Shown here: piece by piece, positions 1 to 55,623 of the stretch
Position numbering within the stretch: position 1 is the stretch's first letter
Layout of the letters: each line of letters begins with the position of its first letter
DNA from: Vitrella brassicaformis CCMP3155
Taxonomy: Eukaryota > Protista > Chromerida
Length of the DNA stretch: 64,000 nucleotides
Reading direction: 5' to 3'
Assembly (NCBI GenBank): GCA_001179505.1
Contig: CDMY01001045.1
Span: forward strand, 124,001 to 188,000
Made by a program: the position numbers and the translations under genes
Notes under the pieces: generated by a model
The model's input: only the letters and a program-made list of their open reading frames with translations
Told to the model about the DNA's origin: nothing
The model's database searches: none

Positions 1-1797
1 CGTAAGCGCACACAGTGTAGATGGTGTCTGAGTCTATTGTGGCCGCGGGTACCTTGGAGACACTTGAGTGAGGCCAAGGCCGACTGCAGCCCTCCGACTG
101 GAGCAGCGAGAGACAGCGCTGTGCTCATGGTTGAACTTTGACGTCTTAGCAGATGACTGTTCTTTCTCTTGCTGTGCTGGGTCTTCGTAGCGTCGTTGTC
201 CTTGCCCATGGCTGATCCACTGACCGCCTCCGCTTTGGTCGCCGTCACCGCGATGTCGGTCAAGCTATAAGCTGTGGGTGCCTGTCTCTTACACCGGGCC
301 TTGACAAGCCTCTTGGCCGACAGATGAAGTAGGATCGCTGATAGATGGAAGGAGACAAGCATAATTGACCAAGAATTCACTGATGTGTCCATGGCAGAGG
401 CGCGTACAGTAGGGGGAGGAAATGTCCATGATCAGGTCAAACATTGAGATGAGGACAGAGTAGAAGAGTTTGCTGTTCAGCGTCACGGCCTCGGCTTGGA
501 GCATGCCTGATCAGGAACATCACACCCCCTATTGTACGTCTGTCAGCCATGAAGAGGTGACTGACGTGGGAAGAGCACATAGACTATCGCAGGCAGTGCT
601 ATAAGCAGCGAATTGCATGTGGGAGGTCCCTTCTGGATATACAAAACACCATGAGAAACAAAGTCCGCTGTCTCTTAATTGGCTCTGCTAGTCAGTTCGT
701 ACTTTGAGCGACCGCACGAGTTTATTGACAAGTGCGATAGCGGGCATGAAGACTGCGAGATATATGACAGCCATCCAGAATCGGTCCCTGTCAGTGGATG
801 ATGCAGCAGCAAATCGTGGCGAGAGGGCAGCGAGCCATATTACTGCCATAGTGAATGCCATCGTGACAGCTGCCGTGACCTTCACAACATACTCTCGTCT
901 GGCCCTAATATTCAACGAGCCCGCAGCGCGCCAGAAGTACACAAATATAGCCGCATAGCATGAGCTCCAGTAAATCGGAATGATGATGTTTCTTCTTTCT
1001 TGGGTGTCGAAATGGAGCTCATGACCAATAGGGATCAACAGACCGAGCGCCACTGCCGGAAGAAAAACGAGCCACTCTTTCTTCAGCCGCACTATCATTT
1101 TTTGCAGGTCCGTCCCGTCTGTGACGAGCACGACCATGAGCAGCAGCATGAGAGTTTCAATAATGCGGCGGAGGATGCCAAACACTGGCCCAAACGTACT
1201 TGACAGACACCAATAGATGACCATTAGAGTGCAACCGACTAGAACGATGCCAATGGCGAGAGCAATTGCTGACTGCTGAAGTAGAGCCACAGAAATTCGC
1301 CTCAAGGTCATCACGAACGGCTCGGGCTCAAAAGTTGCACCAACAAACACCTCTGTTGTGCTGCCGTCGGGGTGATGCATCGTTTTATACTCAAGCGTGG
1401 TCGGCCACTCTTCAAAACTAGCCTCGTAGCCTGCCGCCTCCCTCAACTCACCAACCAAATCCACTATAATACGCTCCTCACGACGCAGTTCAGGGCCAGA
1501 GGCGGATTCTCTCGTGTCGCCTGTCCCAGTTGTGGTTGTGCCGATGGTTGACGTAATCGAATTCCGTCTTTCGTGGCGTCTTTCGCCGTCGCCGTGTGTT
1601 GTGGTTGTGATGTCGCTTGGTCCAGGTGCTGTGTTGTTTGTCTCTTCAACGTCGTGCTGTTGTGGGCACGGCAGGCTGACTGAGGACGAGAGATTGGACG
1701 AGAAGGTCGAGAGAGCGGCTGGCTGATGTACACATTCATCCCCAGGTGATTGAGGCGGTCTCACAGCCTCGCCTTTCGCCGTCAGCGCGTTGGACAT
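1..1797 (-). CDS. Multi-pass membrane protein of unknown function, copy 1 (3' part runs off the window start)
   Basis: Long first exon 688-1797 with a Thr/Ser-rich N-terminus then several hydrophobic helices. Further exons near 289-504 and 60-330. Closely paralogous to the gene at 15243-17575. Confidence 0.75.
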
Positions 1798-1800
1798 TGT
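1..1800. repeat. Inverted segmental duplicate of ~15245-17046
   Basis: Reverse complement of 1-20 matches ~17027-17046 with one mismatch. Similarity runs through exons and introns and stops just upstream of the ATG (~1800 / ~15245). Copies differ by substitutions and in-frame indels. Confidence 0.9.
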
Positions 1801-1897
1801 CGACCGTTTCAGCGTTTCAGGAGATGCGAGCTACGCCCGCAAGCAGATCTCGAAGAAGGATGGGATGGCATGAAAGGAAATCCACGTCAAAGGATGC

Positions 1898-2741
1898 ATG
1901 GCATCTCGGTGCAGACCTTACTGTCCATCTACTTGTTTGCCTTCCTCCGCTCTGGCACGGGATAAAGATCATCACCATCTGTGTCCCAGATCATACGGCC
2001 CTGCATATCGCCAGCAGGCTGTCGCCTCAGCAGATCACATGCTCTCAAGTCCGACAAAAGTAGCAGCAGCAGCGCCAGCAGCGACAAGAAGAAACAGAAG
2101 AGGTGCGTGGTGAATGCATGCTGATAGACGGATGCTACACATCGTCACTCGAGGTGCTGTTTGTGGTAACGTGTCTGCAGGAGAAACAGGCGGCCATGAT
2201 GGAGATGATGGACCAGTCAGTCCAGAAGGCCATCATAGAGGCGCGCACACGGCGCACTGCCGGCGGTGTGGAGGACCGCACCACACAGGTTCGTCGGGGC
2301 AGAAAGAGGCGCAAGGGCGAGGAGATGCGTGTGGCACTCACACTCGACCGCATTGGACGGGACCGGTAGGACAGCACGAGGATAATGGACGGACAGGGGT
2401 AGAGAAACAGGCTGCCGACACCATTGCCGTGGCAATGGAGGCAGCGCAGGAGACCATCTCGTTCGGCCAGTATGCACTCGGTCAGCCACAGATCACACGC
2501 AGACGCATGTAACCAATCATTGTGTGTCTGGTCTGTGTGTGCCTGCGTGCCCATGCAGCGATACCGACGGACGACGCCGACGAGACGGATGACCTCAGAG
2601 GATGGACACTCGGACAGGTCAGACAGACCGAGGGATGGAGGGGGAGTACATGGATGTGTGTGTGTCTTGTGCAGGCTCCTGCGTGCCTTCGACACCGTGT
2701 TCGACCGCTCCAAGCTCATGATCGGACTCGTGCGAGCCTAA
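1898..2741 (+). CDS. Hypothetical multi-exon protein
   Basis: GT-AG-bounded exons read EKQAAMMEMMDQSVQKAIIEARTRR..., EKQAADTIAVAMEAAQETISFG, IPTDDADETDDLRGWTLGQ and LLRAFDTVFDRSKLMIGLVRA* (stop 2741). Start uncertain. Confidence 0.5.
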
Positions 2742-3027
2742 TGAGAGCCATGGGTGGATAAGAGTGGATGGAAGGGGGAGATGCAGATGCATGAGTGAGA
2801 GGCTGCATGACCGTCTCGACTCGATGCCGGGTCACCGTTTAGGCTAGCTCGTGAAGGAACAGACGACTGTATTTGATGGACCATTGATGATTGCATTCAC
2901 TGCGCGGATGCGTGGCTGGATCGCGTTCACTCGATTGTCCACTGGGTGTCCCGATACATACGTACGCGTCCGCTTCTGCTATCATTTCGATGTGGTCCGC
3001 GGAACTTGAGGGAAAAAAAGTCGCAGG

Positions 3028-3050
3028 CCGCCTAGGGTGCTGCCTGAAAC
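3028..3050 (+). promoter_or_regulatory. Shared upstream motif CCGCCTAGGGTGCT-xxx-TGAAAC, copy 1
   Basis: ccgcctagggtgctgcctgaaac here versus ccgcctagggtgctccatgaaac at 15178-15200. Both lie just upstream of gene starts. Confidence 0.35.
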
Positions 3051-3246
3051 CGCTGCGACGAAATGACGAGCGAAGGAGCTAAGAGGCATGGCGGTGACGA
3101 GGTGAGGCGTGCAAAGCCTGTTGAAGCCCCGAAACGGCATTTTGATTCATAGCTTTGGTGGCCTGGCTGCACGATGGCTGCCAGCGCAGGTGAAAGAAGA
3201 GGTGTTGTTTGCCATGTGACGTCTGCAGCAGACGTCAACGTTGACG

Positions 3247-4991
3247 ATGCGGCAGCAGCTGCTGGCACAGATTCAGGCCTATCAGACCAATCAGGCGAGG
3301 GTAAGTAACCAAAACACTCACTCACTCATTCAGTGCATCCACCACTCATCGGTTGCTTTGTGTTGTTTGTGTGTGCTGTGGTGTGCAGGTCAACAATGGC
3401 ATCGGCCGACTCACTCAGATGGACACCGCTGCGATCACACCACTGGTGCGGCCAGACTGCCAAACACAACACAAAGGCCTCTGTTTCATGGTATCTCGTG
3501 TGCCTCGCTTGTTCGTCAGATGGTGGCCAAGGTCACTCGTCAGCTCGCCAACGAATCGGCCCGTCTGGCCCAGCTGGCGGACAACATCGACTCGACCATC
3601 GCACTCACAACACACACACAGGTGAGAGAGATCACACACGCACAGCTCCATGTGTGTCTTTCTGTGTGTCATCAGGCTCGGCGGCTGCGCGTGACTGACA
3701 TTCCCGCCGGGCCGATGAGCATCGTCCTGGCACTCTCTGACCTCACCACCGTTGCCCGACTCAAGGCGACAGCCCGCCACTTCAGAAACGCCCTGCGGCT
3801 CATCGTCCGCAATATTCGGCTGCGGAAGGCCATCGAGTGTGCGGGGGTTGGCGGTGTGGTGCGGTTCGGGGCTGAGCTGAGCCACGGCGATGTGATGAAG
3901 GCCATGTGGTTGATGGAGGAGGGGGGCGAGGGCGGCTGGGGGAAGGTGGCGGACACGCTCGATTCGGTGAGCATCTCGGCTATTGCCAGCTGCCGGTCAC
4001 TGTGGGTGCCGGAGATCTGCAGACACACGCCACCAAGGCGGTAGGCACGACACACAGAAGAGGCAATGGGGCAATGAGTGAATGGCTCTTTCTCTGTGTC
4101 TGTGTGTGGACTGAAGGACTACTCATCACTGCCCCGTTTCTGTGCGCAGTCGATGATCGTCGGCCGCCATGTGGCCCTCCGTCGCCCCAATGGCCAGCAT
4201 GACGGCACACTCCAGCTGTTCCGCCACAATAACGAGCTCCGCGTCATTCGCAACGAGCCCGACTTCGCCATCGTCATCAACCCGCCCCTCCTCCCCACCC
4301 GCTGCGTCCATCCCTTCCATCCCTTATGGCAGCACCCATTCCAGCAGCACGCCAGGCCGCACGACCCGCCCGTCGGCAGCCGCATTTGGTGGCTGGATGG
4401 TGTGGGCTGGACGGCGGGTGTGAACGCCGGGGGCGTTTCCGCATCAGCGAGCTCCCTGCTGAAGAGGCTGCTGATACTATATCACCGGAGGATGGCTGTG
4501 GGTGGCATGTACCAGTCGCCACCAGTGGCGGTAGACCGGTAAGTGGATGGACGGCAGGTCGCTCGTGGTCTGTTTCAAACATGCATATGTTCGCCAGGAG
4601 TGTGCGTGGAGGTTATCTGGATCGTATTCTGGCTCGATCGCCTCACACGCCCCTCGACGCGTGTTCACACGTGACGGCATATGAGGCGGTCAGTGGGGCC
4701 TGTCTGCAGGCTCATGTGCTGACATCATCGGCCGACCCCTTCATCGCATACATTGCCTTTTCCATTCCCTCCATTCAACGCAGCAACGGTACGCATACAC
4801 GTAAAGAAAGAGCACCTCGACAATGCCCCCATGGCTGCGTGCAGTGCGCATCATCATCGTTACCACCGAGGCGCCAGCAGCAGGTGTGGCCAATGGCGCC
4901 CTTCGCACAGCGATTCCCCCTGACCGCCGCCAAAGTGCGTCTCGTCCTCGGCCCCATCGCCCCCATCGTCCTCGACGGCCAGGCACCGTAG
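3247..4991 (+). CDS. Coiled-coil + F-box-like protein of a lineage-expanded family; probable frameshift near the C-terminus
   Basis: Spliced frame MRQQLLAQIQ.../VNNGIGRL.../MVAKVTRQLANESARLAQ.../ARRLRVTDIPAGPMSIVLALSDLTTVARLKATARHFRNAL (F-box-like spacing). The terminal FAQRFPLTAAKVRLVLGPIAPIVLDGQAP* is offset by one base at ~4898-4901. Confidence 0.6.
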
Positions 4992-7267: not shown

Positions 7268-8131
7268 TCAAAGGCTCGTTCGGTGTCTCGGTGAGGCGGG
7301 CTCCGACATGATGTGCAGCCCATCGTCATTGTCTGGCTGTGTCTGTCTGAGTGCCAGCAGGACCCGCTCGATGCGCGCCAGTTGCTGCACCTGGTCAGAG
7401 AAGATCCACGTCAGCACTGACCGGGGCGTGAGGGGCGGGGGCTTCAGGTCCAGCTGGGCGATGTACGTCAGGTGCAGACGGCCGTCCGGCTCCCGCCTCG
7501 CATGCACGCCACCCATCTGCATGGCATGGCAACACAATCCCCACGGCACACAGACAGACACAGATGACGGGTGGTGAGAGGGGAGACAGACGGTCGCTTC
7601 CTTCCAGGATTGCGTTGCGTGTGGTGGTACCAGGATGGAGGCTCGCGTGGCCCTTTTCTTGGGCGTCATAAGCAGGCTGTCGGGGACGAGCGGACCCAGA
7701 TCGACGGCAAGGAAGAGCATGCTGTCCTTCTCCTGCACACACACACGCACACACACGCGCACGCACAGAGATTATAATACACACAAATGGATTGGTGCTT
7801 ACTGACCTCGACGACGTGTGTGATGTGGGCGAGGACTCGGTTGAGGTCTGCGGGGATGGCACTCTTGTACACCTGCACACACACACAAAACACACGAATG
7901 AAGGCCGATTGATTCGTGACTGCACTGGGTCGATCGACAGACAGGTGACCATACATACCTGGTATGTCAGCCATGTGTTGGCATCAACCTCCGCCACATG
8001 AGTCCCTGCAGTGAGTGCAGTGACCGACACACAACACACACGCGTGCAGTGCAGTGCACCCCTCGGTCATGTCATTGCGTGTCGCGTGTGAAGGAGGTAC
8101 GCCTGACCTCCCTCAAACAGCCAAGTCTACA

Positions 8132-8165
<34 letters not shown>

Positions 8166-23132: not shown

Positions 23133-25629
23133 TGTCAGTCTGTGTTTGTCTGTTTGTCCACACAAACAGATAAGCAAATGAGCTAGCTTTTCCATCCCTC
23201 TCTGTCTGTCCGCCCTGCACGCTGATCAGTCAGCTCTTCATTCGGTTGACATCTCATCAGACACCGCCCGACTGCATCATGTCGGACAGATCCACTCCAC
23301 ACGACACACGGCCGTCCACTCGTGAGTCACCACACACGATCCACGCCCTTCGCCTGTCTCACCGCATGGCCGTCGTCCGTCGGCCTGTTGATGACTTGCG
23401 GGACGTCATAAAACGACCTGCACGCACCAAGGACAATTTAGGCACTCACTCTGTGTGCGTCAGTCACATCGGCCGACATCATGACGACACTGACCGGCGC
23501 TGCTTCTTGTAGTTGTTGCGCCGCTCGTTCGTGCGCATTGTCGGGGGCCTGCTGTGTGTCTCGGCTTCGCTCTGCAGCAAGCACAATGACAGAAAGAAAG
23601 ACAGACAGACAGACAGACAAAGAGGTCAGATGCTGCCAAAGCAGCCAGCCTCTTCTCTCTCACTTTGTTTTCATTTGTCATTTTGGCGGTCTTGTGGTCG
23701 TGTCTGAGCATGACGTCATGCTCCTGAGCCACACACACAGAGAGCATCGCCTGTCTGTGTGTCTGTGTCTGCCTCTTTGTTTGTTTGGTGACTTGCTGTG
23801 CGGCGGCCAGACGTTTTTGCAGCGATTGCCACGTCGCCTCGTACTCGTGCTGCTCCTGCACACACATAGATGGACAGCACAAGCAGCGAGGATGGATGGA
23901 TGGATGGATGTGTGGGTCATGAAGTCAGACCTGTTGTGTCTTGTGGAGGTCGCAGGTCAGTTGAGAACTGTGGACATAGACCTGACAGCGAGAGAGACAC
24001 CGAATAAATGAATGAATGAATGAATGAGGCACACACAGAGACACACACACGCACTTGTCGCGTCTCCCGTCTGATCGATGCGATCCTCTCCTCAGCCTCA
24101 GCACACGCTGACACTCACACACACACACACGCACACACACCGATCGGTGAATGGGGAACTGAAGACGCAGAACAGCAGAGCAGTCGACCGACCAATGGAT
24201 GGATGTCTCGCCTGACCTTTCTTCATGTCTTCGACGTCCTTCCTGGCCGCTTCCTTTGCCCTCTCCAGCTGACCGCACTTGTCCACCGCGTCGACGTACT
24301 CGGCCCTGGCGTGCAGCTCGGCCACCGACAGATATCGGGCCGGCAGCGCCTTCAGCAAAAAGGACAGCTCAGCAAGCTGACGGGCCGTGTCGGCTGCCGT
24401 CATTGGCGAGATGTCATCGAGTGGGGCTGGCTGGTCATGCGGAGAGACACTCATTTGTGTGTGTGTGTGTGTGTGTGTAGTGGGCGGGCGACAGGCAGAG
24501 CGAGAGAGTTGTGTCTCGGCAGCACATCGATCGCATACATGTGTCTGTGTATTTATTGTACACCCGGCGAAAGAGGGAGGAAAGAGACTATGTATGCAGC
24601 AGAGCCGTACAGGCCAGTCATGGGTGTATTCATGGTTTGCAGAGTGAAATGTGCACGTGAGCAATATGCAGAAGGCAAAGCAGCAACGCGACAAGGTCAT
24701 TCCCAGCAAGGCGAATAATGCGAACAATCCCCAGCGCACACCACACGTGCAGTGCCTCCCACACACACTCGAAGCAAAAGAACGCAACAGGACGTCGAAA
24801 AGGTCGACAAAACACATGCAAGGCACGTATGCATGAAGGCGTGCAGCACAGCAAGGCCTACGAGTAAAGAGTGAGTGTGCAGCGACACTAGCTACATGAT
24901 GCCAGGCAGTGGCTGGGTGGGATGGGCTGCACGGCGTCGAAGATCTTGATCTCGTCCGCCCAGTGGAGGGCTGTGTGGGGGACAATTGTTTACTGGATGC
25001 ATCCTGAAGCCTTTAGTACAAGAGGTCTCTCTCACTCATTCATTCACACAGACACGTTGCGATAGCACCACTGTCCGTCTGTCCGTCCATGGATGATACT
25101 CATGTGTCTGTCTCGCTGTCTCGCGTGTCTGTGTTACTGTATGTGGTTGTGTGTGTCCCACCGCCGGCTGTGTAGATCTAGATGCCCTTCTCCAAATCCG
25201 TCAAACTGCACACACACGACACGACCCAACCAACCCGTCTCACAACTCGGCGTGTGTGTGGTTGAGTTGCTGTTTGGTGTGGGTGAGCTGCGCCGCGAGT
25301 GTGGACTCGACCTCACGCACACGCATCAGCTCGTCAGACAACTCACTCACCTACACGCACACAAACACATACAGCGAGAGAGAGAGAGGTGTCAATGGCT
25401 GTGTGTGCTGTCTGTGTGTCTGTTTGTGACCTTCTTGTTGTGTTGCTGCTGGAGTGGTTTGATTTGTGCGTGATGTTGTTTGTTGAGGCTGGCCATCTGT
25501 CGGTCCCTCTGGGTGCGCGGATCGTGGAGGGCCGCGGATGCATTCTCGATGAAGCTCTTCTCGTGCGCCTCCACGGCATCCGCCCGACAAGCCAACGAAC
25601 ACAACACACCCAACTCTGACATCCACACA

Positions 25630-25669
<40 letters not shown>

Positions 25670-26158
25670 AAGGGAGAGAGAAGTGTGAATAAGCAGCCAG
25701 TGTTGCTTTTTTTAATCGAGCAGCTCTTTGTGCCGCTCCTCTCCCTCCCGGATCTGCCGGCGGGCGGCGATGAAATATAGAATATCATGTTAGAGACACA
25801 GATAGCATAGCCATCGATCGATTAGCATGAGGGATTCAGATTAGGCAATAGTGACAGGTTTTTGCATCAGACTTGACACATATGAGAAGTGCAAAAACCT
25901 GTCTGATGACCGACACGCAAAAAAAATTGTCTTATAAGTACGACAGAAAAGAAAGGTCAGACGCAGCAGCGTCCTCCACCCTTCCACGCGACCCGCTCTC
26001 ATCTCCTGATGGCTTTTCCTCCTGCAGGCCCTGGACAAAGTCGCTTCCCAAGACTCGCCGCTCGGTTTTGGTCTCAAGGTACCTCCTTTTGCGGCTGTCT
26101 CGAGTGTCAGATATGGATCGCTTCCGGTGATCCATCCCCTCTTCCTTCTCTGTCGGCT
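23133..26158. repeat. Inverted copy of 52736-55523 (kinase-type tail + gene Y 5' exons + last ~230 coding bp and 3' flank of the RTX-like gene)
   Basis: 25437-26158 matches the reverse complement of 52736-53457 with a constant coordinate sum (78894) and no difference I could see. 23133-24853 matches 53758-55523 with scattered SNPs. Confidence 0.9.
23327..25620 (-). CDS. Coiled-coil protein segment (tail shared by the STE20 kinase and gene Y); may be an alternative junction or misplaced contig
   Basis: Exons ADAVEAHEKSFIENAS..., VSELSDELMRVREVES..., MTAADTARQLAELSFLLKALPARY..., EQHEYEATWQSLQKRL..., EHDVMLRHDHK..., SFYDVPQVINRP...VW* (stop 23327). Confidence 0.5.
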
Positions 26159-27002: not shown

Positions 27003-30000
27003 CAGACGTACGCACAGGCATGTTTCAGACTCACACAAGTGCTGATGTTGCTTTGCTTCCGCTGTCCAGGCAGGCGGGCTGCATGCACTGCATCATTGTG
27101 TGCGGATTGAAAAGTACTGGTCAGCGTGCAGAGGACAGACAGACAAAGCTGCTCACGGTGAGGCCTTTCGCATCTGGTCGATGTGTAGCTCTATCTCACA
27201 CACAAACTGCGCACACCCACACCCAGACACACAGATGGATGAGGCCGGCTGGTGGACTGGCATTGGTCCGTGCGTACATTGTCAATGTCCTCGGCGTGCT
27301 TGACGCGTCTTTCACGGAAGAACTCGGACAGCTCCCTCACAAACTCTTTGTCGTGCGGCTCAACACGCTTCGAAGACGGCTTCCGCATGTGCTCGAACAC
27401 GGGCTCCAACACACGCTCGTACGCTGCACCCCACCCATACACACACGTCAATTCACAAATGCCTGTGCTTGTGTGTTTGAATGGGGCGAGTGGGACAGCT
27501 GTATTGCCGACCGTTTGTGATGGGTAGTTTTGGCTTGCCGCGCATGGTTCTGGACCACATGGCGGGCGACGACCCGGTGGCCCTGCTGCTCGATGAGCCG
27601 GCTGCTTCCACACGAACCTGCGGCACACCCGGCTCGCCCATCCCCATCGCTGTGCAGTCGAGGTAGGCAAGAGACGCATGTGTTAGCGCCGGTGCATGTG
27701 GATCGCTATAAGGCTTCCTACCCAGGTTCATTTCCTTTGCAAACTCCCCCGCCACTTCTTGGCTCGTGTCGGGGTTCCACAAATAAGACGACTCCTCTGT
27801 CTGCGGCAGCACACCTAGACACATGCATACACGCCAGGTCAGACACGTGTCTCCAATGTACGTGTGTATGTGTGTATATCGACCAGGCTCGCTGGGCCGA
27901 GCCCCGCTGGCCGAGATGGCCCTGTGGTAGATGCTGTCAGGCTTGGGGCTCTCCTGCACGCTCGACTCGAGCACGGATGCCAGCTCCTGAGATTCTCCCC
28001 GGGTCATCCGCTTTCCGGGAGCCTCTAACGCGGCACCCTCGCCGCTCTCGCCCTCTATGATAGAATGGTCCGGCTCATGATGGTTGCCGGGGTGGCCCGC
28101 GACAACCATGGCGCCAGGCATGCCGCTGGGCTCCTTGAGCGTGCCTGTCCGCGATGGCGTCGGGGTGATGCCCGTGAAGTCCCACTCGCTGATGTTTGAT
28201 ATGCTGTGGAAGGCCCGCTCGCTGCTCGGCTGGGACGACTGGGCCGGCGGCGGGAGCGGCGCACGTGAGCCCGAAGCGGGCGAGTGCGAAAGGGAATCAA
28301 GCGCCCGCAGGGGCACCCGCGCTGAGGCGTCGTACAGGCCGTCCAAAGAGCTCCCTGGGGGCAGATACGCGAGACAAGGGGGGATCAGTTCAAGGGGTGG
28401 TGCCCGTCGATGAGTGTAGCCTGCCTACTTTGGATGGAGGAGCCGCCCCCTTCGTCCCCTGAGCTCGGGGCGATCTTCGAGCTGTCTTGCGGAGCCTTGA
28501 CGATCGTACCCACTGAAGGTCCGTCCACCCACACAGATATAGATGTTGTGCGTGTCCACGTGTCTCTCTCTCTCTCTCTGTGTGTGCTGACTTCCGTCGT
28601 TGCAGTGGTCTGCAAATGCCTCGGCGTCGACACGTCTCTGCTGCTGCTGTTCTTGCTGTCTCTCCTGCTGCTGGCGGCGGTCCTTGAGTTGCCATGCGAA
28701 GAATCTGTTGTTGCCAGACATGCTCTGGCCGTCGATATGCATCCGACCCACATCTGCACTCATGGAGAGATAGATTACGATGCATACCAACCGGGTAAGT
28801 GACGAGCGAAGAAGCGCGGACCCACCTTCCCCCTTTCTGTAGTTGGGGATGATCTTGTAGTCTTCGGGGCGAAGCTTCTTCTCCTGCAAGGAAGGACAGA
28901 CATCTGTCAATCTGCAATGTGTCCTCCGGCAAACGTGTTTGTCCCTCCGTACGCTTGCATCGTCGCTCGATGAGGACGGGGCAGAGGGCGTACCTACCGA
29001 ACGAACGAACGAAAGGATAAACGAAAACTTCGTCGGCGTGTGCGTCCTTGCGTACGAGTCTTGTTCTTTGCGCTGCACACACCACACACACACAAGACAC
29101 ATGGCATCATCAAGCGATTGCACAACGCTGCGTGAAGCTCTTGTCGACGACTCACTCGATGTCTTTGATCATGTCCTCGGTGCTCGTGTATTTCTTGACG
29201 TCTGGACGAAAAACACAACGACGCAGCAGCGACACTCTGGTGAGGTCGCTTGGTGGCCGACTTGGTGGCATTCTGCTCACTTCGCAGGAAGGCGTGTTTG
29301 AGCAGCTTAGCTGCCGTCGTGCTGACAAAAGATGTGCATCCATGCATCCACCAATTCGTCCATGTGCGTGTGAGCAATCAATGGGACCGTACCGTTTGTT
29401 GGGTTCGCGCTTAAGACACTCGTGAACGAAGTCACGGAGCACCCTGCATTCATACATGTCGGACGGAGGCAATCAATGCATGTAGTCGTCGCTCAGTCTC
29501 TCTTGCTCACTCAGTAACTCACTTGCTGGCCGAGTCGGGCAGTTTGCAGTCCTTCTCAACAAAGTCTTTCGACCGCGCAATGTACACCAACACCTGCGGT
29601 GGGTTGTAGGCCAACCGGCCAATGACGGGTGGCTGGTTTGCTGGGAGAGGTGTGTCTGCGGGTTACCTTGACAGGGTTCTCGTCGGCGAGCGGCGGGTCC
29701 CCCGTGGCCATCTCGAACATGGTGATGCCGAACGACCATATGTCGGCCTTCGAGTCATACGTCTGACCGCACAACACCTGACCATCCATCCATCCATCAA
29801 CAGGCATACATACATATAAGGATTAAATGATTAAGTGAGTGCAGGCAATGAACGACCCATGGCGTCGCGTACCTACCTCTGGTGCCATCCAATAGGGTGT
29901 CCCGACAAAGGTGCGGGCCTTCTCTAGATTGGCTGCCAGAGAAGGGGGGCAGGGCAGGTGTGTCTTTCTCTCTGCGTCTACACGTCGTCAGTCATGTGGC

Positions 30001-30905
30001 CATACTTTGCAGCTCGTGCGAGACGCCAAAGTCAGCCAGCTTGACCCGAGCCTGCGTGTCGAGCAGGATGTTGGCCGCCTTGATGTCGCGATGAATCTTT
30101 GACTGAGCCGGGCTGGACAAACGCACACAAGAAACAAGGGACAACTTCATTGCTTGCCTGCCCTGCGTACTGGCGTGTGTGCGTGGCGACCTGTGTAGGT
30201 AGACGAGCGCCTCCAGCGTGTCTTTGGCTATGGCAGCCAACACCGGCTCCGGCAGCGGACCGTGCTTCCGAATCTGCAGCAGCAGCAGCAGCAGCAGGCA
30301 GACGACAACGTGTTAGTCTGAGCTGACTGTGCGTGCCATGCGATAGCGTGTTTGTGCTGACGATGTCTCTGAGGGATCCGCCGCCGAGGAACTCCATGAT
30401 AATGATCAAGTGAGCATGGTAAGTGAAGGACTCAATGTACCTTTGTGGGACAGATGGCCAGCGAGGAAGACACACACAGACAGATAGACATAGAGGAGAA
30501 AACAAACAGCGAAAACAGCCAGTCGTGTCTCTCGTCTGACACTTCTGGTTCCCTGTCTGACTTGATGATGTTTTGGTGGTTGCACTTGGAGAGCACCGAG
30601 ATCTCGTTCCTCACTTGCTCCAACGAGTCGGTGTCCTTCATGACGTTGTCGCTCATGTCCTCCAAGTCCACCACCTTCAACGCCACCGTCGGCAGGCTCG
30701 CCTCACCTGACCCCTCAGCCGACGCCACCTTGGCCTCGTACACGCACCCGAACGCACCCTCACCCACAATCCGCTGCACTATGTAGGTGTTCCTGAAGCC
30801 CTTGAGCTCGTCTCCCGGCTGGTAGCTGTTGGCCCGTACACGAGCCACCTGCGGCACCTGCCGACCGCGGCTCAACGGACGGGAGCTCGACTGAGTCTCT
30901 GACAT
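26459..30905 (-). CDS. STE20/GCK-family Ser/Thr protein kinase with long coiled-coil C-terminal tail (3' end interrupted by the gap)
   Basis: VGEGAFGCVY, VALKVVDLE, NEISVLSKCNHQNI, IIMEFLGGGSL, IHRDIKAANILL, KLADFGVS, FVGTPYWMAPE (STE20 signature), YDSKADIWSFGIT and FVHECLKREPNKR. Confidence 0.93.
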
Positions 30906-39948: not shown

Positions 39949-39980
<32 letters not shown>

Positions 39981-40420
39981 TGTGTAGGCGCACCGTTCAC
40001 TCACCACGCGTGTCTGTCAACAAACTTCCAGCGAACTCCCTAGTGGAGAGAAAAACGAATTGCTTCGGGCTAGCTACTTACCGCCATATACCTACCGTGG
40101 CCGCCGTGCCAACCTGCCTCTCCAATGGCACATAACACGAACACCAGAAGCTTGTCTCAACCAATACTAATACATGATTGCACCATACATGGCCTGTCTA
40201 CCTCTCTGTCCCTCTGTCTAGACCACCGATGGATGACTCACGGCAACAAGTGGGTGGACGTGAGCCACACACATGCGCACATGAGTTAGGTCAAGCCTAC
40301 CTAGGACGGCAGGCTGGCAGGCAGTCAGTCAGGCAGGCAGCAGGCACCTCATGCGCTGTCTTGTCTTCGGTGAGCAGCGGCCGAGGCGAGACGCCTGCCT
40401 TGCCCCCCCACCTTCCCACC
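39300..40420 (-). CDS. Possible small multi-exon gene, product unknown
   Basis: Several short GT-AG-bounded segments between microsatellite-rich introns (e.g. REGPLVVPVFALSGGTDDQSVIAWLLSDSTMVDRRHL). No start/stop model established. Confidence 0.25.
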
Positions 40421-48907: not shown

Positions 48908-51900
48908 ATGATGATAACGGCTGTCCTTCTGCTGGTTCTGCTCGGAAAGAGAGCCACCGTGGTGACTGCCCAATGTGAGTAGGGGCCAAAACATGTCGTG
49001 ACGATTCTGTCCACGTGCACTAGTCTGTGCTCGTGTGCCGTCCTGTGTTTCATTTGTCAGCCCCCCCTGCGACGAATGAGGCGGGCTTCAGAGCGCTGTT
49101 CGGTACTTCTGACTTCGTCGCGCCGACATGTGCCTCAACGAAGACGGTCACAAATGCAGCTGATTCTGGGGTTGGCACACTACGAGAGGCACTTGGGATG
49201 CTTGAAGCGCAACAGCCCGACACAGAAGCGACCATCCGCTGCATTCGCATCGACTCCAGTGTGACCCAGATCGTCCTGCAAAGCAGTCTCATCTTCAAGG
49301 GGCGCAATGTCTACTTATTCGCTGAAGACATCAGCAATCCGGACTCTTTCCCTGTTGTGAAGGCCCCAGATAGAGCTGAGCTGCTCATTGCAGAGGGAGC
49401 CAATGACTTCACCATTGCTGGCATTCGCATCACCAACAAAGGCGCAGATCGGAACTATGACGCGCCGCGTCAGGTGATTCTTCTCAAACCGAACCGACAG
49501 TCGAATATCAAGGCAAGTGTGGCCTTCTATCGAGTATCCATGGAGGAGTGCAGCAACCCGGATGAAGGATGGTTTTCAGCAGTGCGCATTGAGAAAAACT
49601 ACGCATCTCAGACGGATAGCATTGATGTCTCGTTCTGGGAATCGGCTTTCCACGGAAACGAAGGGAGCGTACTTGAGTGTACTTCGTCAGGATCATATTC
49701 TCCCATCAGGAGGGTCACTCTGAAGAAAACCTTGGTTTATGGAAATCGGATATATGATGGCCCCGATACTACAATTTATTACGCTATGGTGAATCTCCTT
49801 CAATGCGGTGCAGCCATTAATGATACAACATTCGACAGCAACGAGGCTTCGGAAGCCGATTGCGGCACTGCGCCGATCTTGAGACTTGGAGGCCTCGAGC
49901 AGTCCGAAAGAGTGGTCGTCTACGAATCGACTTTCCAAAACAACCACATAAAAGCACAATGCGGGAGCGAAGAGCACGTGATCGTAGTTTCTTACAACGT
50001 CAAGAGCGTGACAATCGAGAAGAGCATCTTTGTTGGCAATACTCGAGAATCTATTGGCCATGGCCGAGTGACATCTTATGACGGGAGTGCGCTCAAAATT
50101 ACCAACATCCACGGTCATACTAAGAGAGTAATACACGGTACTGCTCTTTGATGTTCGAATGTATGTTCTTTAGCTGATGTCGTCGTTACCGATTGCATCT
50201 TCCAAGATAACAGGCCGGGAGCTATCTACATTTACCGGCAATACGGAAATCAATATCATGGACAACGCGGCGCGGTTATTATCAGGGGATCAACATTTAT
50301 GGACAACGCGGCGCTGAGCAGCGATGATGTTGACGACGCGAATAGCCGCTGTGCGCTGTATATACATTGGTATCGTCATGTTGAGGTCGTGGACAACTGT
50401 TTCGTGGAAAACGAGCTCACAACAATGATACACGCGATCGACCGGAATGAAGGCCGCCTCGATACTGAGACATTCACCCTCAGCGGCAATGGGCTCGTAC
50501 CAAGGGCAGTGGGTGGCGAATCAGACGTCTTGTATAAGTTTGAGAACCCGAACCAGTACTACGAAGGCATAATCATCGGTACAAATGAACAGAAGTGCGC
50601 CAACGTATGTGGCAATGGACTAGTGATGCCCGGCATTGAGGAGTGTGATGATGTCGGAACACCTGACAGCCTTGCAACACCAGAAAACGGCGATGGCTGT
50701 AGTGCGTCGTGTACGATCGAAGAGGGGTGGGAGTGTAACAATCTGGAAACATTCGATGATGACGGAGAACGACCTTTACTGCACACGTGGGTGAAGGCAT
50801 ACAGAAAAGGAGAAAAATGAGACACGATGCTTGTGATATAAGTTGGATTGTTCTCTCGTTGGGCTCTCTTGCAGCTCGGCCAATGATCCCCACCCTCAGT
50901 ACCGACACTTTTAGCACTCGAATCTTGCCTTTCACAGTGGGAATTATCCTTTCCGAGCCAGCCAAATCTGGCACTTTTGAGGCCGGTGATATTGCACTTT
51001 CTGGTGCTGCTGAGGCGTCTGTTACTTCTCTGCAAACTGTCTCCAATCAGCACTTCACAGCCAATCTGGAGCCAACTAGCGGCGGCAGTTTAAGTATTGA
51101 GCTGACAGCCGGCAAAGTGGAGCTGCACAATGTGCCTGGCCATTTCAACGAAGATTCCAACGTCTTGACCGTCACAATCGGTGGGTGCACATGTAGAGAG
51201 ACGAGAGGTAGGGCATGAGTGTGGACGCGTTGTGGTTTTCTAGATTCAACCAGACCGACTCCCGTCTTAGCAGCACCAGCGGCCTCTCCTGATCTTATTG
51301 TGGAAAGTGACCCTTTCATTGTGACAGTGATCTTCGACGAGGCTATCAAGACTTCTACACTTACACTCAGTGATTTTAGCGTCACGAACGCTTCCGTGGT
51401 CAGCGTGACTGAGACGGGGGCCTCCAGCGACACCTTTAGCATTGGTGTAGCACCGGATACAGAGGGAGGGGTACAAGTGCAGCTCCCAGAAGGCAAAATT
51501 GAGGACCTGGTCGGCAACCTAAACGCGGCCTCAAACGTCTTGGTAGTTACCTACGGTGGGCATAAAAGCAGACACGTACGTACATACTTTGTGTCTCGCT
51601 TCTTCATGTATTACATGCGCTTCTAGAAATGCCGCCAACAACCATTCCGCCGCCAAAAGCTGAACCTCCCACCACTACGGAAGATGCAGCCCTCCCGCCA
51701 GGTCTTCTTTCTCGCATCCTGGCAAAGAAAAAGCCAAATGCCTACCTGCTTTGTACGTGCCATGCTCAGGTGGAGGCGATGGGCCGCCAGACGGCGAGAA
51801 TGGTGTGCCGCCAGAAGGAGAGAATGGCGAGGCGATAGGTCAGATCCATCAATCGGCCCACCTGTTGGCAATGCACCCGGTGTCTTTTTGCAGGTCCGCC

Positions 51901-52962
51901 CGATCCGTCAGATGGAGAGACGCTGCCGCCTCTTCCGCCAAACATACCCTTTGATCAGGTGGAGATTTCGTCAGGGAGCTCAGATGGCGATCCAGCGGAA
52001 GGTTGCCAAATGTCCTACTCAGCAGCAGGAGGTGATCACATGCATCCATGCATACGTCAAATGCTCTTTTGATTGTCGCATTATTTACTCATTTGTTGCC
52101 AGATGTGCGTTTGGCCTGTGCCGACTCAGAAAGCAGGAAGTTCATTTCTCTGGCCGAGAGCAGCGTGATCGTGCACGTCGAAGGCTCGAGACATGATGAC
52201 ACTTTGAGGGGCAACAGCCAAGACAACACTTTGGTTGGAGGCGATGGAGCGGACACACTCGATGGGCGCGGAGGCGTCGACCAGCTCGCTGGCGGCAGAG
52301 GTGCTGACACCTTTGTCGTCTCGGATGTGCCGTGTGATGTGACAATTCTCGACTTCGACACCGGCAGCACTCACGATCGGGTGAACCTTGTCAGCTTCGC
52401 CTCACTCACGAAGATGAGCGATCTACAGGAGAGAATGACCAGCGGCAGCGTGATCCTCGACCTCGATCCGAGCCACAGAGTGCGGATCCTCCACCGGACA
52501 CTTCAGGAGATTTTCGACCCCAGATACTTCCTGTTGACTAGTGAGCTCGAGACAGAGGGCGTGGCGAAAGACGAGGAATGCGGCTGGTTCACCTACAGCC
52601 GACCTGAATGTGTCGATACAATCCTTTCCATCGTATTGGGCATCGTCGGTGTGGCCGGCCTGGGTATTGGGACATGGCAAGTCGTCCATAACTTTTTGAG
52701 GCGGGGCCAGAATCCGACACCAGAGGCGGGAGAGAAGCCGACAGAGAAGGAAGAGGGGATGGATCACCGGAAGCGATCCATATCTGACACTCGAGACAGC
52801 CGCAAAAGGAGGTACCTTGAGACCAAAACCGAGCGGCGAGTCTTGGGAAGCGACTTTGTCCAGGGCCTGCAGGAGGAAAAGCCATCAGGAGATGAGAGCG
52901 GGTCGCGTGGAAGGGTGGAGGACGCTGCTGCGTCTGACCTTTCTTTTCTGTCGTACTTATAA
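48908..52962 (+). CDS. Type I surface protein with beta-helix-like region, Myxococcus-type Cys-rich repeat, two bacterial Ig-like domains, RTX Ca-binding nonapeptides and a TM anchor
   Basis: Signal exon MMITAVLLLVLLGKRATVVTAQ; TVTNAADSGVGTLREAL; repeated STF-x-x-N turns; CGNGLVMPGIEECDD...NGDGCSASCTIEEGWEC (50608-50736). Ig-like exons at 50873-51181 and 51244-51556. GSRHDDTLR-GNSQDNTLV-GGDGADTLD-GRGGVDQLA-GGRGADTFV (52183-52317), then TM ILSIVLGIVGVAGLGIGTWQVV. Confidence 0.85.
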
Positions 52963-53224
52963 GACAATTTTTTTTGCGTGTCGGTCATCAGACAGGTTTT
53001 TGCACTTCTCATATGTGTCAAGTCTGATGCAAAAACCTGTCACTATTGCCTAATCTGAATCCCTCATGCTAATCGATCGATGGCTATGCTATCTGTGTCT
53101 CTAACATGATATTCTATATTTCATCGCCGCCCGCCGGCAGATCCGGGAGGGAGAGGAGCGGCACAAAGAGCTGCTCGATTAAAAAAAGCAACACTGGCTG
53201 CTTATTCACACTTCTCTCTCCCTT

Positions 53225-53264
<40 letters not shown>

Positions 53265-53279
53265 TGTGTGGATGTCAGA

Positions 53280-55325
53280 GTTGGGTGTGTTGTGTTCGTT
53301 GGCTTGTCGGGCGGATGCCGTGGAGGCGCACGAGAAGAGCTTCATCGAGAATGCATCCGCGGCCCTCCACGATCCGCGCACCCAGAGGGACCGACAGATG
53401 GCCAGCCTCAACAAACAACATCACGCACAAATCAAACCACTCCAGCAGCAACACAACNNNNNNNNNNNNNNNNNNNNNNNNNNNNNNNNNNNNNNNNNNN
53501 NNNNNNNNNNNNNNNNNNNNNNNNNNNNNNNNNNNNNNNNNNNNNNNNNNNNNNNNNNNNNNNNNNNNNNNNNNNNNNNNNNNNNNNNNNNNNNNNNNNN
53601 NNNNNNNNNNNNNNNNNNNNNNNNNNNNNNNNNNNNNNNNNNNNNNNNNNNNNNNNNNNNNNNNNNNNNNNNNNNNNNNNNNNNNNNNNNNNNNNNNNNN
53701 NNNNNNNNNNNNNNNNNNNNNNNNNNNNNNNNNNNNNNNNNNNNNNNNNNNNNNNNNTGCTGTGCTGCACGCCTTCATGCATACGTGCCTTGCATGTGTT
53801 TTGTCGACCTTTTCGACGTCCTGTTGCGTTCTTTTGCTTCGAGTGTGTGTGGGAGGCACTGCACGTGTGGTGTGCGCTGGGGATTGTTCGCATTGTTCGC
53901 CTTGCTGGGAATGACCTTGTCGCGTTGCTGCTTTGCCTTCTGCATATTGCTCACGTGGACGTTTCACTCTGCAAACCATGAATACACCCATGACTGGCCT
54001 GTACGGCTCTGCTGCATACATAGTCTCTTTCCTCCCTCTTTCGCCGGGTGTACAATAAGTACATAGACACATGCGATCCGATCGATGCGCTGCCGAGACA
54101 CAACTCGATCTCGCGTCAACTCTCTCGCTCTGCCTGTCGCCCGCCCACTACACACACACACACACACACACATACACACACATGAGTGTCTCTCCGCATG
54201 ACCAGCCAGCCCCACTCGATGACATCTCGCCCATGACGGCAGCCGACACGGCCCGTCAGCTTGCCGAGCTGTCCTTGTTGCTGAAGGCGCTGCCGGCCCG
54301 ATATCTGTCGGTGGCCGAGCTGCACGCCAGGGCCGAGTACGTCGACGCGGTGGACAAGTGCGGCCAGCTGGAGAGGGCAAAGGAAGCGGCCAGGAAGGAC
54401 GTCGAAGACATGAAGAAAGGTCAGCTGGGAGAGACATCCATAAATCCATCGGTCGATCGGCTGCTCTGCTGTTCTGTCTGCGTCTTCACTTCCCCATTCA
54501 CCGATCGGTGTGTGTGTGTGTGAGTGTCAGCGTGTGCTGAGGCTGAGGAGAGGATCGCATCGATCAGACGGGAGACGCGACAAGTGCGTGTGTGTCTCTG
54601 TGTGTCTGCCCCACTCATTCATTCATTCATTCATTTATTCGGTGTCTCTCTCGCTGCCAGGTCTATGCCCACATTTCTCAACTGACCTGCGACCTCCACA
54701 AGACACAACAGGTCTGACTTCATGACCCACACATCCATCCATCCACAAATCCTCGCTGCTGTGTGCTGTCCATCTATGTGTGTGCAGGAGCAGCACGAGT
54801 GCGAGGCCAAGTGGCAATCGCTGCAAAAACGTCTGGCCGCCGCACAGCAAGTCACCAAACAAACAAAGATGCAGACACAGACACAGAGACAGGCGATAGA
54901 TGCTCTCGGTGTGTGTGGCTCAGGAGCATGACGTCATGCTCAGACACGAGGACAAGACCGCCAAAATGACAAATGAAAACAAAGTGAGAAGAGGCTGCTT
55001 TGGCAGCATCTCACCTGTCTGTCTGTCTGTCTGTCTCAAGGTCTGTCTGTCTGTCTGTCATTGTGCTTGCTGCAGAGCGAAGACGAGACACACAGTAGGC
55101 CCCCGACAATGCGCACAAACGAGCGGCGCAACAACTACAAGAAGCAGCGCCGGTCAGCCAGCCCGTCCTCATGGTGTCGGCCGATGTGACTGACGCACAC
55201 AAAGTGAGTGCCTAAATTGTCCTTGGTGCGTGCAGGTCGTTTTATGACGTCCCGCAAGTCATCAACAGACCGACGGACGACGGCCACGCGGTGAGACAGG
55301 CGAAGGGCGTAGATCGTGTGTGGTG
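53280..55325 (+). CDS. Gene Y: coiled-coil protein paralogous to the kinase C-terminal tail, lacking the kinase domain
   Basis: Exons ADAVEAHEKSFIENASAALHDPRTQRDRQMASLNKQ, MTAADTARQLAELSLLLKALPARY, EQHECEAKWQSLQKRL and SFYDVPQVINRP...VW* (55325). Start unresolved; contains a gap. Confidence 0.5.
53458..53757. other. Scaffold gap (300 N)
   Basis: Run of N. The inverted copy suggests the missing sequence is ~580 bp (24854-25436). Confidence 1.
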
Positions 55326-55623
55326 ACGCACGAGTTGGCGGCTGTGTGTCTTGTCTTGTGGAGTGGATCTGTCCGACATGATGCAGTCGGGCGGTGTGTG
55401 ATGAGATGTCAACCGAATGAAGAGCTCACTTGTCAGCTGCAGGGCGGACAGACAGAGATGGATGGAAAAGCTAGCTTATTTGCTTATCTGTTTGTGTGGA
55501 CAAAGAGACAAACACAGACTGACCCGTGTATATGGCGTAATCAAGAACGAGGGGAGGAAGGAAGCCTTACTTTCGATACGTGCAACCTATCCACACATAT
55601 CGACTGTCCGTCCCCAATTCCAT

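Follow-up and report, generated by a model that had tools for sequence, protein, structure and literature searches.

Vitrella brassicaformis is a coral-associated alga and a free-living relative of the Apicomplexa. The window analysed here is a stretch of 64,000 nucleotides (nt) of the genome of strain CCMP3155 (contig CDMY01001045.1, positions 124,001 to 188,000); all positions below are those of the window. On the plus strand it contains a gene of nine exons (E1 to E9), which runs from an ATG at 48908 to a TAA at 52960-52962. The gene probably belongs to a Vitrella-specific family of membrane-anchored surface proteins built of bacterial-type modules, and its reading frame is broken in this copy. 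An earlier interpretation made from the letters alone (the original prediction) had placed a gene at 48908-52962 and described it as an intron-containing eukaryotic gene of the secretory pathway; the coordinates are correct and the description is supported. Exon borders were set by reading the frames directly and comparing them with paralogs, and every search was run on single exons. All eight introns are GT-AG and measure 36 to 88 nt. By homology with the paralogs all are phase 1, and the lengths of E2 and of E4 to E8 are exact multiples of three.

The first exon (E1, 48908-48974, ending in phase 1) carries the start codon and a hydrophobic N-terminus, MMITAVLLLVLLG..., which resembles a signal peptide. 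The same N-terminus is present in the annotated protein P0001 and is kept in the N-termini of the paralogs P0002 and P0088. E1 is plausibly the signal peptide for the endoplasmic reticulum (ER) that had been predicted.

E2 (49061-50137, 1077 nt) encodes the N-terminal part of a right-handed beta-helix. The last coils of the helix lie on E3 (50174-50786, 613 nt, ending in phase 2). The ADSGxGTLREA cap motif occurs in E2 at 49147-49191 as VTNAADSGVGTLREA, so the lead motif named in the original prediction (VTNAADSGxGTLREA) is present. The AF2 model of E2 (pLDDT 71.7, pTM 0.79) is a right-handed beta-helix with regular three-strand coils. Its top Foldseek matches are all beta-helix proteins (probability about 1.0), the best being PL6 alginate lyases and pectin-lyase-like helices with TMq of about 0.5; its Atlas neighbours are NosD, Beta_helix and Chlam_PMP clusters. 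The predicted beta-helix-like region is thus upheld by fold and not by the Pfam Beta_helix profile, which reaches only 14.6 and 15.2 bits on E2/E3, under the cut-off of 25.9. There are four FxxN motifs in E2; in the beta-helix such motifs are spaced about 30-35 residues apart, with 7 observed against about 1.3 expected from shuffles. A Pfam search gave no match to PF02415, the family of chlamydial Pmp-type FxxN / GGA[ILV] repeats, and NCBIfam gave no CSLREA-type or other match for E2. When E2 was compared by phmmer with 1.84 billion cluster representatives, only Vitrella proteins and one spurious match were returned; the latter, P0089, is an unrelated repetitive Cys-rich protein.

The beta-helix is followed in E3 by a Cys-rich repeat at about 50605-50736. 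It matches TIGR02232 (myxo_disulf_rpt) with an E-value of 2.8e-10 and 39.8 bits, above the cut-off of 20.8, and Pfam DUF4215 weakly (17.8 bits, cut-off 27); a Myxococcus-type repeat had been named here, correctly. E4 (50875-51180, 306 nt) and E5 (51244-51555, 312 nt) encode the first and the second immunoglobulin (Ig)-like domain. E5 is Big_12/Big_5-like. Its Big_12 match is marginal (E 3.2e-6, 27.7 bits, cut-off 27.0) and its Big_5 match lies below the cut-off (E 6.7e-4, 20.8 bits, cut-off 23.6); comparison of E5 with PDB sequences gave nothing meaningful. E4 has no match in a Pfam search and is 34% identical to E5 (BLASTP E 7e-12). The two bacterial-type Ig-like domains of the original prediction, one on each exon, are therefore recovered, E5 marginally by its Big_12 match and E4 through its homology to E5. 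A Pro/Gly/acidic linker then extends over three small exons, E6 (51627-51701), E7 (51770-51838) and E8 (51894-52031), each of phase 1-1. The homologous linker junctions are confirmed in a transcript of a paralog (L031/P0003), and the predicted Pro/Gly linker of the window copy is thus spread over E6-E8.

The last exon, E9 (52103-52962), encodes a leader, a roll of repeats-in-toxin (RTX) nonapeptides, a cap, a pair of cysteines, a transmembrane (TM) helix and a basic tail up to the stop codon. The five tandem nonapeptides lie at 52183-52317 (GSRHDDTLR, GNSQDNTLV, GGDGADTLD, GRGGVDQLA and GGRGADTFV); two are degenerate and three canonical. All five had been predicted, and PF00353 confirms them (E 1.3e-12, 47.9 bits, cut-off 23). 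Sequence matches of E9 in PDB include the RTX part of CyaA (3e-16) and PrtC (4e-10). The AF2 model of the E9 ectodomain (pLDDT 78.5, pTM 0.73) matches the C-terminal Ca-binding domain of serralysin/alkaline protease in Foldseek (probability 1.0, TMq 0.60-0.66), and E9 is modelled as a parallel beta-roll with a C-terminal cap.

A bacterial-type cap at 52318-52536 was delimited by alignment with bacterial RTX proteins. Its predicted core DVTILDFDTG...DRVNL aligns with the bacterial D-T-I-L-D-F, and the later ...YFLL aligns with the terminal DFLL/DFLV. The aligned bacterial proteins stop at this point. The Vitrella proteins continue past YFLL into an acidic spacer, a Cys pair (CGWF..PEC, 52579-52611, from the reading of E9), a hydrophobic helix and a basic tail, and a free C-terminal type I secretion signal is not present. 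The TM helix lies at about 52615-52686 (hydropathy KD19 2.18), and the 91-residue tail behind it contains a conserved RKRSxSDTRDSR motif. The predicted TM helix and charged tail are confirmed. The proposal that the TM anchor replaced the signal of the type I secretion system (T1SS) does not hold: the bacterial C-terminal module is retained in full as far as YFLL, with the Cys pair, TM helix and tail as additions behind it.

The reading frame of this copy breaks at the E3/E4 junction. E3 is 613 nt long here and 615 nt long in four paralogs, so that it ends in phase 2 rather than phase 1. In all four paralogs E3 ends with ...GPS(I/V)C(T/S) and one base before the GT, and E4 starts with CT-CG(N)-CC(N)-ATG after the CAG; in the window copy two bases are missing from the last codons of E3. 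Intron 3 (50787-50874, 88 nt, GTGGGT..CAG) has a donor and an acceptor which are conserved in the four paralogs and used in a transcript of one of them (contig C217). Splicing at these sites (50786|50875) gives T-SANDPHPQYRHF-stop, which is out of frame and ends at a TAG at 50912-50914, 13 codons into E4. In the MMETSP transcript open reading frame (ORF) P0090, the last part consists of 41 residues peculiar to this copy (DSLATPENG...GERPLLHT) and, behind them, exactly SANDPHPQYRHF; this tail after ...RPLLHT is frame 2 of 50876-50911. These 41 residues and the shifted tail show that transcripts of this copy exist and use the conserved splice sites, and that the deficit is not an assembly error. 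A sequencing error behind the 2-nt deficit was also considered and is rejected, since the independent MMETSP transcript carries the same shifted reading. The frame is therefore not open across all splice junctions (the cumulative phase is 2, and P0090 stops in the shifted E4), and the continuous ORF of the original prediction breaks at E3/E4 when the paralog-conserved sites are used. By its sequence this copy is unable to encode the full-length protein. No lesion is seen in the exon reading of E4-E9, and the copy is most likely recently disabled.

Intron 3 contains a second AG, at 50841-50842, and this bears on whether the gene could be intact as it was originally drawn, with one mRNA giving a type I adhesin of about 1170-1180 residues to which use of this AG would add about 11. 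From 50763 on, frame 0 has no stop through intron 3, and the AG stands in the compensating phase; the resulting intron of 56 nt would be inside the size range of the family. In the remaining exons of this copy the frame is open, and the ratio of nonsynonymous to synonymous substitution rates (dN/dS) is low. However, P0090 is the only transcript evidence, and it uses the conserved acceptor and the out-of-frame reading. The conserved CAG comes after a strong pyrimidine tract and the second AG does not, and the retained insert would be a hydrophobic stretch found in no paralog. Intron 2 is likewise doubtful. An intact gene is for these reasons quite improbable.

Intron 2 (50138-50173) is a GT..AG intron of 36 nt in phase 1, about half the size of every other intron of the family, and has an in-frame TGA at 50149-50151. 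The public protein P0001 is 385 residues long; it consists of E1 and E2 read into intron 2 and stops at this TGA. In two of the paralogs (C217 and C349) an in-frame 60-nt intron of the same phase occupies the position. A third, on the minus strand of contig C499, has no intron there, and its ORF is open for 539 residues across the position.

It is also possible that the truncated product is itself functional, as a secreted protein of about 598 residues (385 if intron 2 is retained), and that the downstream exons are a decaying remnant. E1 to E3 are open and include the signal peptide, the public annotation is a protein of 385 residues, and P0090 stops soon after E3. This is nonetheless unlikely. 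E4-E9 are without any lesion, and their substitutions relative to the paralogs give dN/dS of about 0.2, as expected if the break is very recent. Furthermore, a premature stop ahead of five introns normally leads to mRNA decay.

The exons E2-E9 are found in the same order at four other loci of the genome, here named by contig and, for C499, by strand: C217, C349, C499(+) and C499(-). The family thus appears to have about five full-architecture copies, including the gene of the window. Lesions differ between the copies. C217 has a frameshift at residue 48 of E2, a TAA in E2, and a 1-nt deletion at the end of E4 which is also in its transcript. C349 has a frameshift and a stop in E2, and C499(+) has a frameshift in E2. 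None was seen in C499(-) when it was read exon by exon from the start of the beta-helix, where the region covered begins, to the stop codon; this copy has two additional phase-1 introns, one of them within the RTX repeats. Upstream in C499(-) (L028, C499:23500-30000, minus strand), FG-GAP-like propeller repeats (..GHVRVFDL..W.QVGADIDGEA..) run straight into the PGTNEAGF start of the beta-helix, and this copy may carry an extra N-terminal propeller. Partial copies also occur. C218 retains only the linker and the RTX-TM end, and C740 retains only the N-terminal cap. At the latter locus (L030, C740:13500-20500), an open frame of 912 residues at 1564-4299 has the same start of the N-terminal cap (66% identity over 77 residues) and no Pfam match at all beyond it.

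Transcript contig L031 (JGI 3300017297) equals the C217 copy exactly in seven blocks, and the six introns from E3 to E9 have been removed at GT-AG borders. In this paralog the beta-helix, Cys repeat, Ig-like domains, linker and RTX-TM end are therefore co-transcribed and spliced together. A spliced transcript had been proposed as a check on the gene; splicing of E3-E9 is found in the C217 paralog, and a full-length intact transcript of the window copy is not. The colinear paralogs and the C217 transcript indicate that the exons form one gene, against the split public annotation (P0001).

Pairs of paralogs have dN/dS of 0.15-0.35, and their synonymous divergence (dS) ranges from 0.3 to saturation (above 2). 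The family is accordingly old and has been under constraint for most of its history, and the lesions look recent. The original prediction of a younger gene is contradicted by these dS values and by the spread of the RTX-TM cassette over many differently built genes.

The likeness between copies differs from exon to exon (loci L025-L028). E5 and E9 of the window copy are nearest to C217, and E4 is nearest to C499(+) and C349; E2 is near C349 only over its first 160 residues. This is a hint of gene conversion among the paralogs. The transcript ORFs P0004, P0005 and P0090 (MMETSP/JGI) are mosaics of different paralogs. P0004 and P0005 have C349- and C499-like fronts, and in P0090 and P0004 the fronts are joined to the E3 end or the tail of this copy. 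These ORFs could have arisen in assembly, as chimeras joined over identical stretches, or could reflect true recombinant transcripts.

The RTX-TM cassette is not confined to this family. PF00353 exceeds its cut-off at 16 loci in the genome. At one of these, C240, a single open exon of 571 residues contains FG-GAP_2 repeats (E 2.4e-29), a mucin-like linker and RTX repeats. C240 and C520 both continue into the cap, TM helix and tail, have introns within the RTX repeats, and share the leader in front of them (...VSC...ITLAE..VEGT..DD); C520 also keeps the ECGWF Cys motif. A count of paralogs with the RTX-TM ending had been suggested, and the cassette is indeed present in several differently built genes. 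Word-based searches with E9 return Vitrella transcripts first and then bacterial RTX proteins, the best match outside Vitrella having an E-value of 1.2e-21. The bacterial matches span only 12-45% of the exon, in its short repetitive part, and those with names are mostly from Alphaproteobacteria. No close bacterial donor is visible in these searches, as E2 finds only Vitrella proteins by phmmer and the matches to E9 are partial. Of the horizontally acquired modules that had been proposed, their bacterial kind stands, and a recent import with a visible donor does not. These findings point to one old acquisition of a bacterial module, its fusion to a TM helix, and its spread by exon shuffling. 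No description was found in literature on RTX or HemolysinCabind in chromerids, in protists or in eukaryotic horizontal gene transfer, and the text of the chromerid genome paper (Woo et al. 2015, PMC4501334) has no mention of hemolysin, RTX, Ig-like or beta-helix proteins.

Bacterial contamination or misassembly, or a recent transfer of the whole gene from a bacterium, might also account for modules which, like RTX, Big_12 and the myxo-type repeat, are typical of bacteria. The Vitrella reads are heavily contaminated: 80% of them are bacterial, and 620 scaffolds were taken out as contaminants (Woo et al. 2015, PMC4501334). Moreover, the 3' end of the gene is included in a duplicate that adjoins assembly gaps. 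The last 227 nt of the coding sequence and the 3' flank (52736-53457, plus strand) recur at 25437-26158 on the minus strand as an inverted copy of 722 bp with 100% identity. Both copies adjoin gaps of 300 N and are flanked by repeats of 92-94% identity (53758-55523 with 24853-23134, and 53795-54363 with 27002-26459); the duplicate arose either by segmental duplication very recently or as an artefact of gap filling. On the other side, the gene has eight GT-AG introns at positions shared with its paralogs, six of which are removed in a paralog transcript, and transcripts of this copy exist. The same gap-free contig holds two intron-split Pkinase exons at 29559-30243 on the minus strand (E 7e-11 and 2e-7), which place the gene in eukaryotic surroundings. 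The introns, the transcripts and these kinase exons together exclude contamination. No bacterial protein among the 1.84 billion representatives resembles the beta-helix, and paralogs with dS above 1 are found on five other scaffolds. An origin of this kind is thus extremely improbable. Just downstream of the gene there is also a (CT)n(GT)n microsatellite (53225-53270), with near-identical copies at 8129-8165 and 39949-39985.

Bacterial RTX adhesins and other T1SS substrates of the LapA, MpIBP and FrhA type have a layout comparable with that of the Vitrella protein. In both, a tandem of Ig-like domains precedes the GGxGxDxUx nonapeptides and a cap stands C-terminal to these, and the alignment extends to the terminal DFLL-type motif. 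In contrast, the Vitrella gene is a nuclear gene with introns, has an N-terminal signal peptide and lacks a T1SS context. Behind its RTX part there is no free C-terminus but a Cys pair, a TM helix and a cytoplasmic tail, and the repeats number only five and the Ig-like domains two. The C-terminal domain of serralysin and alkaline protease (Peptidase_M10_C; 1kap, 1sat and PrtC 1k7i) is the best structural match of the E9 ectodomain. PrtC is matched by phmmer over residues 15-126 (E 4e-10), and in UniRef a paralog transcript bears the name 'Peptidase M10 serralysin C-terminal domain-containing protein'. However, the Vitrella protein lacks a metalloprotease domain, identity is about 21-24%, and its module is membrane-anchored.

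A right-handed beta-helix together with RTX modules is the shared feature of the Vitrella protein and the group of AlgE mannuronan C-5 epimerases and PL6 alginate lyases. The structures matched by the fold of E2 include the AlgE A-module and PL6 lyases, and those matched by E9 include AlgE R-modules. This likeness is at the level of fold only (10-15% identity, TMq about 0.5), and in Vitrella the Ig-like domains, linker and TM helix stand between or after the modules. Lineage-specific secreted and membrane proteins of Vitrella and Chromera which are assembled from shuffled extracellular domains have been described (Woo et al. 2015, PMC4501334, Appendix 5). The present gene is similar in kind, but the text of that paper names no RTX, Ig-like or beta-helix proteins, and public models split the Vitrella gene.

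Taken together, these observations are best explained by a Vitrella-specific family of type I membrane surface proteins, built of bacterial-type modules, of which the window holds a frame-broken member; the probability of this explanation is put at roughly 70%. The proteins of the family would consist of a signal peptide, the FxxN beta-helix, the myxo-type Cys repeat, two Ig-like domains, the Pro/Gly linker, the RTX roll and cap, the Cys pair, the TM helix and the basic tail. The bacterial-kind modules would have been integrated long ago. Placement of the modules on phase-1 exons fits exon shuffling, which would have occurred inside the alga. Transcripts arise from the window copy and are spliced at the conserved sites; the 2-nt deficit shifts the frame to the stop in E4, and the copy yields at best a truncated, secreted protein of about 598 residues with the beta-helix and Cys repeat. 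In intact members, the beta-helix and Ig-like domains may bind ligands or glycans. The RTX roll and cap may fold with Ca2+ in the ER or in seawater and form a rigid membrane-proximal stalk, and the conserved basic, Ser-rich tail may serve in sorting or in control by phosphorylation. Such surface proteins might act in Ca2+-dependent adhesion or bind glycans, as originally proposed.

Several points weigh against this explanation. P0090 was assembled as a chimera over an identical stretch, its 5' part coming from C499(+) and its 3' part from this copy; the junction and frame are thus proven only for the window-specific 3' part. The transcripts obtained for this copy cover neither intron 2 nor its full length. 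A minor isoform that is spliced to the AG at 50841-50842, and so regains the frame, is possible. The term 'Vitrella-specific' rests on single-exon searches, two of them length-limited. What is said of function, topology, Ca2+ binding and surface location is inference.

The frame break makes this copy unsuited as a reference member of the family, and in the public annotation the gene is split. Beta-rolls of the RTX kind count as a hallmark of type I secretion in bacteria. In Vitrella the whole bacterial C-terminal module has its place in many spliced genes, with an ectodomain before it and a TM anchor behind it, so that an extracellular bacterial fold which requires Ca2+ is reused in the eukaryotic secretory pathway. 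The family would be a concrete case of acquisition at the level of domains followed by exon shuffling. A wider and more speculative reading, which is rather unlikely, is that Vitrella domesticated a complete bacterial RTX C-terminal module as a Ca2+-folding stalk cassette and shuffled it over many surface genes. The mosaic transcripts and the discordant likeness of exons among copies would then suggest that the beta-helix subfamily is a partly disabled, transcribed and recombining repertoire, which might resemble the surface-antigen archives of parasitic relatives.

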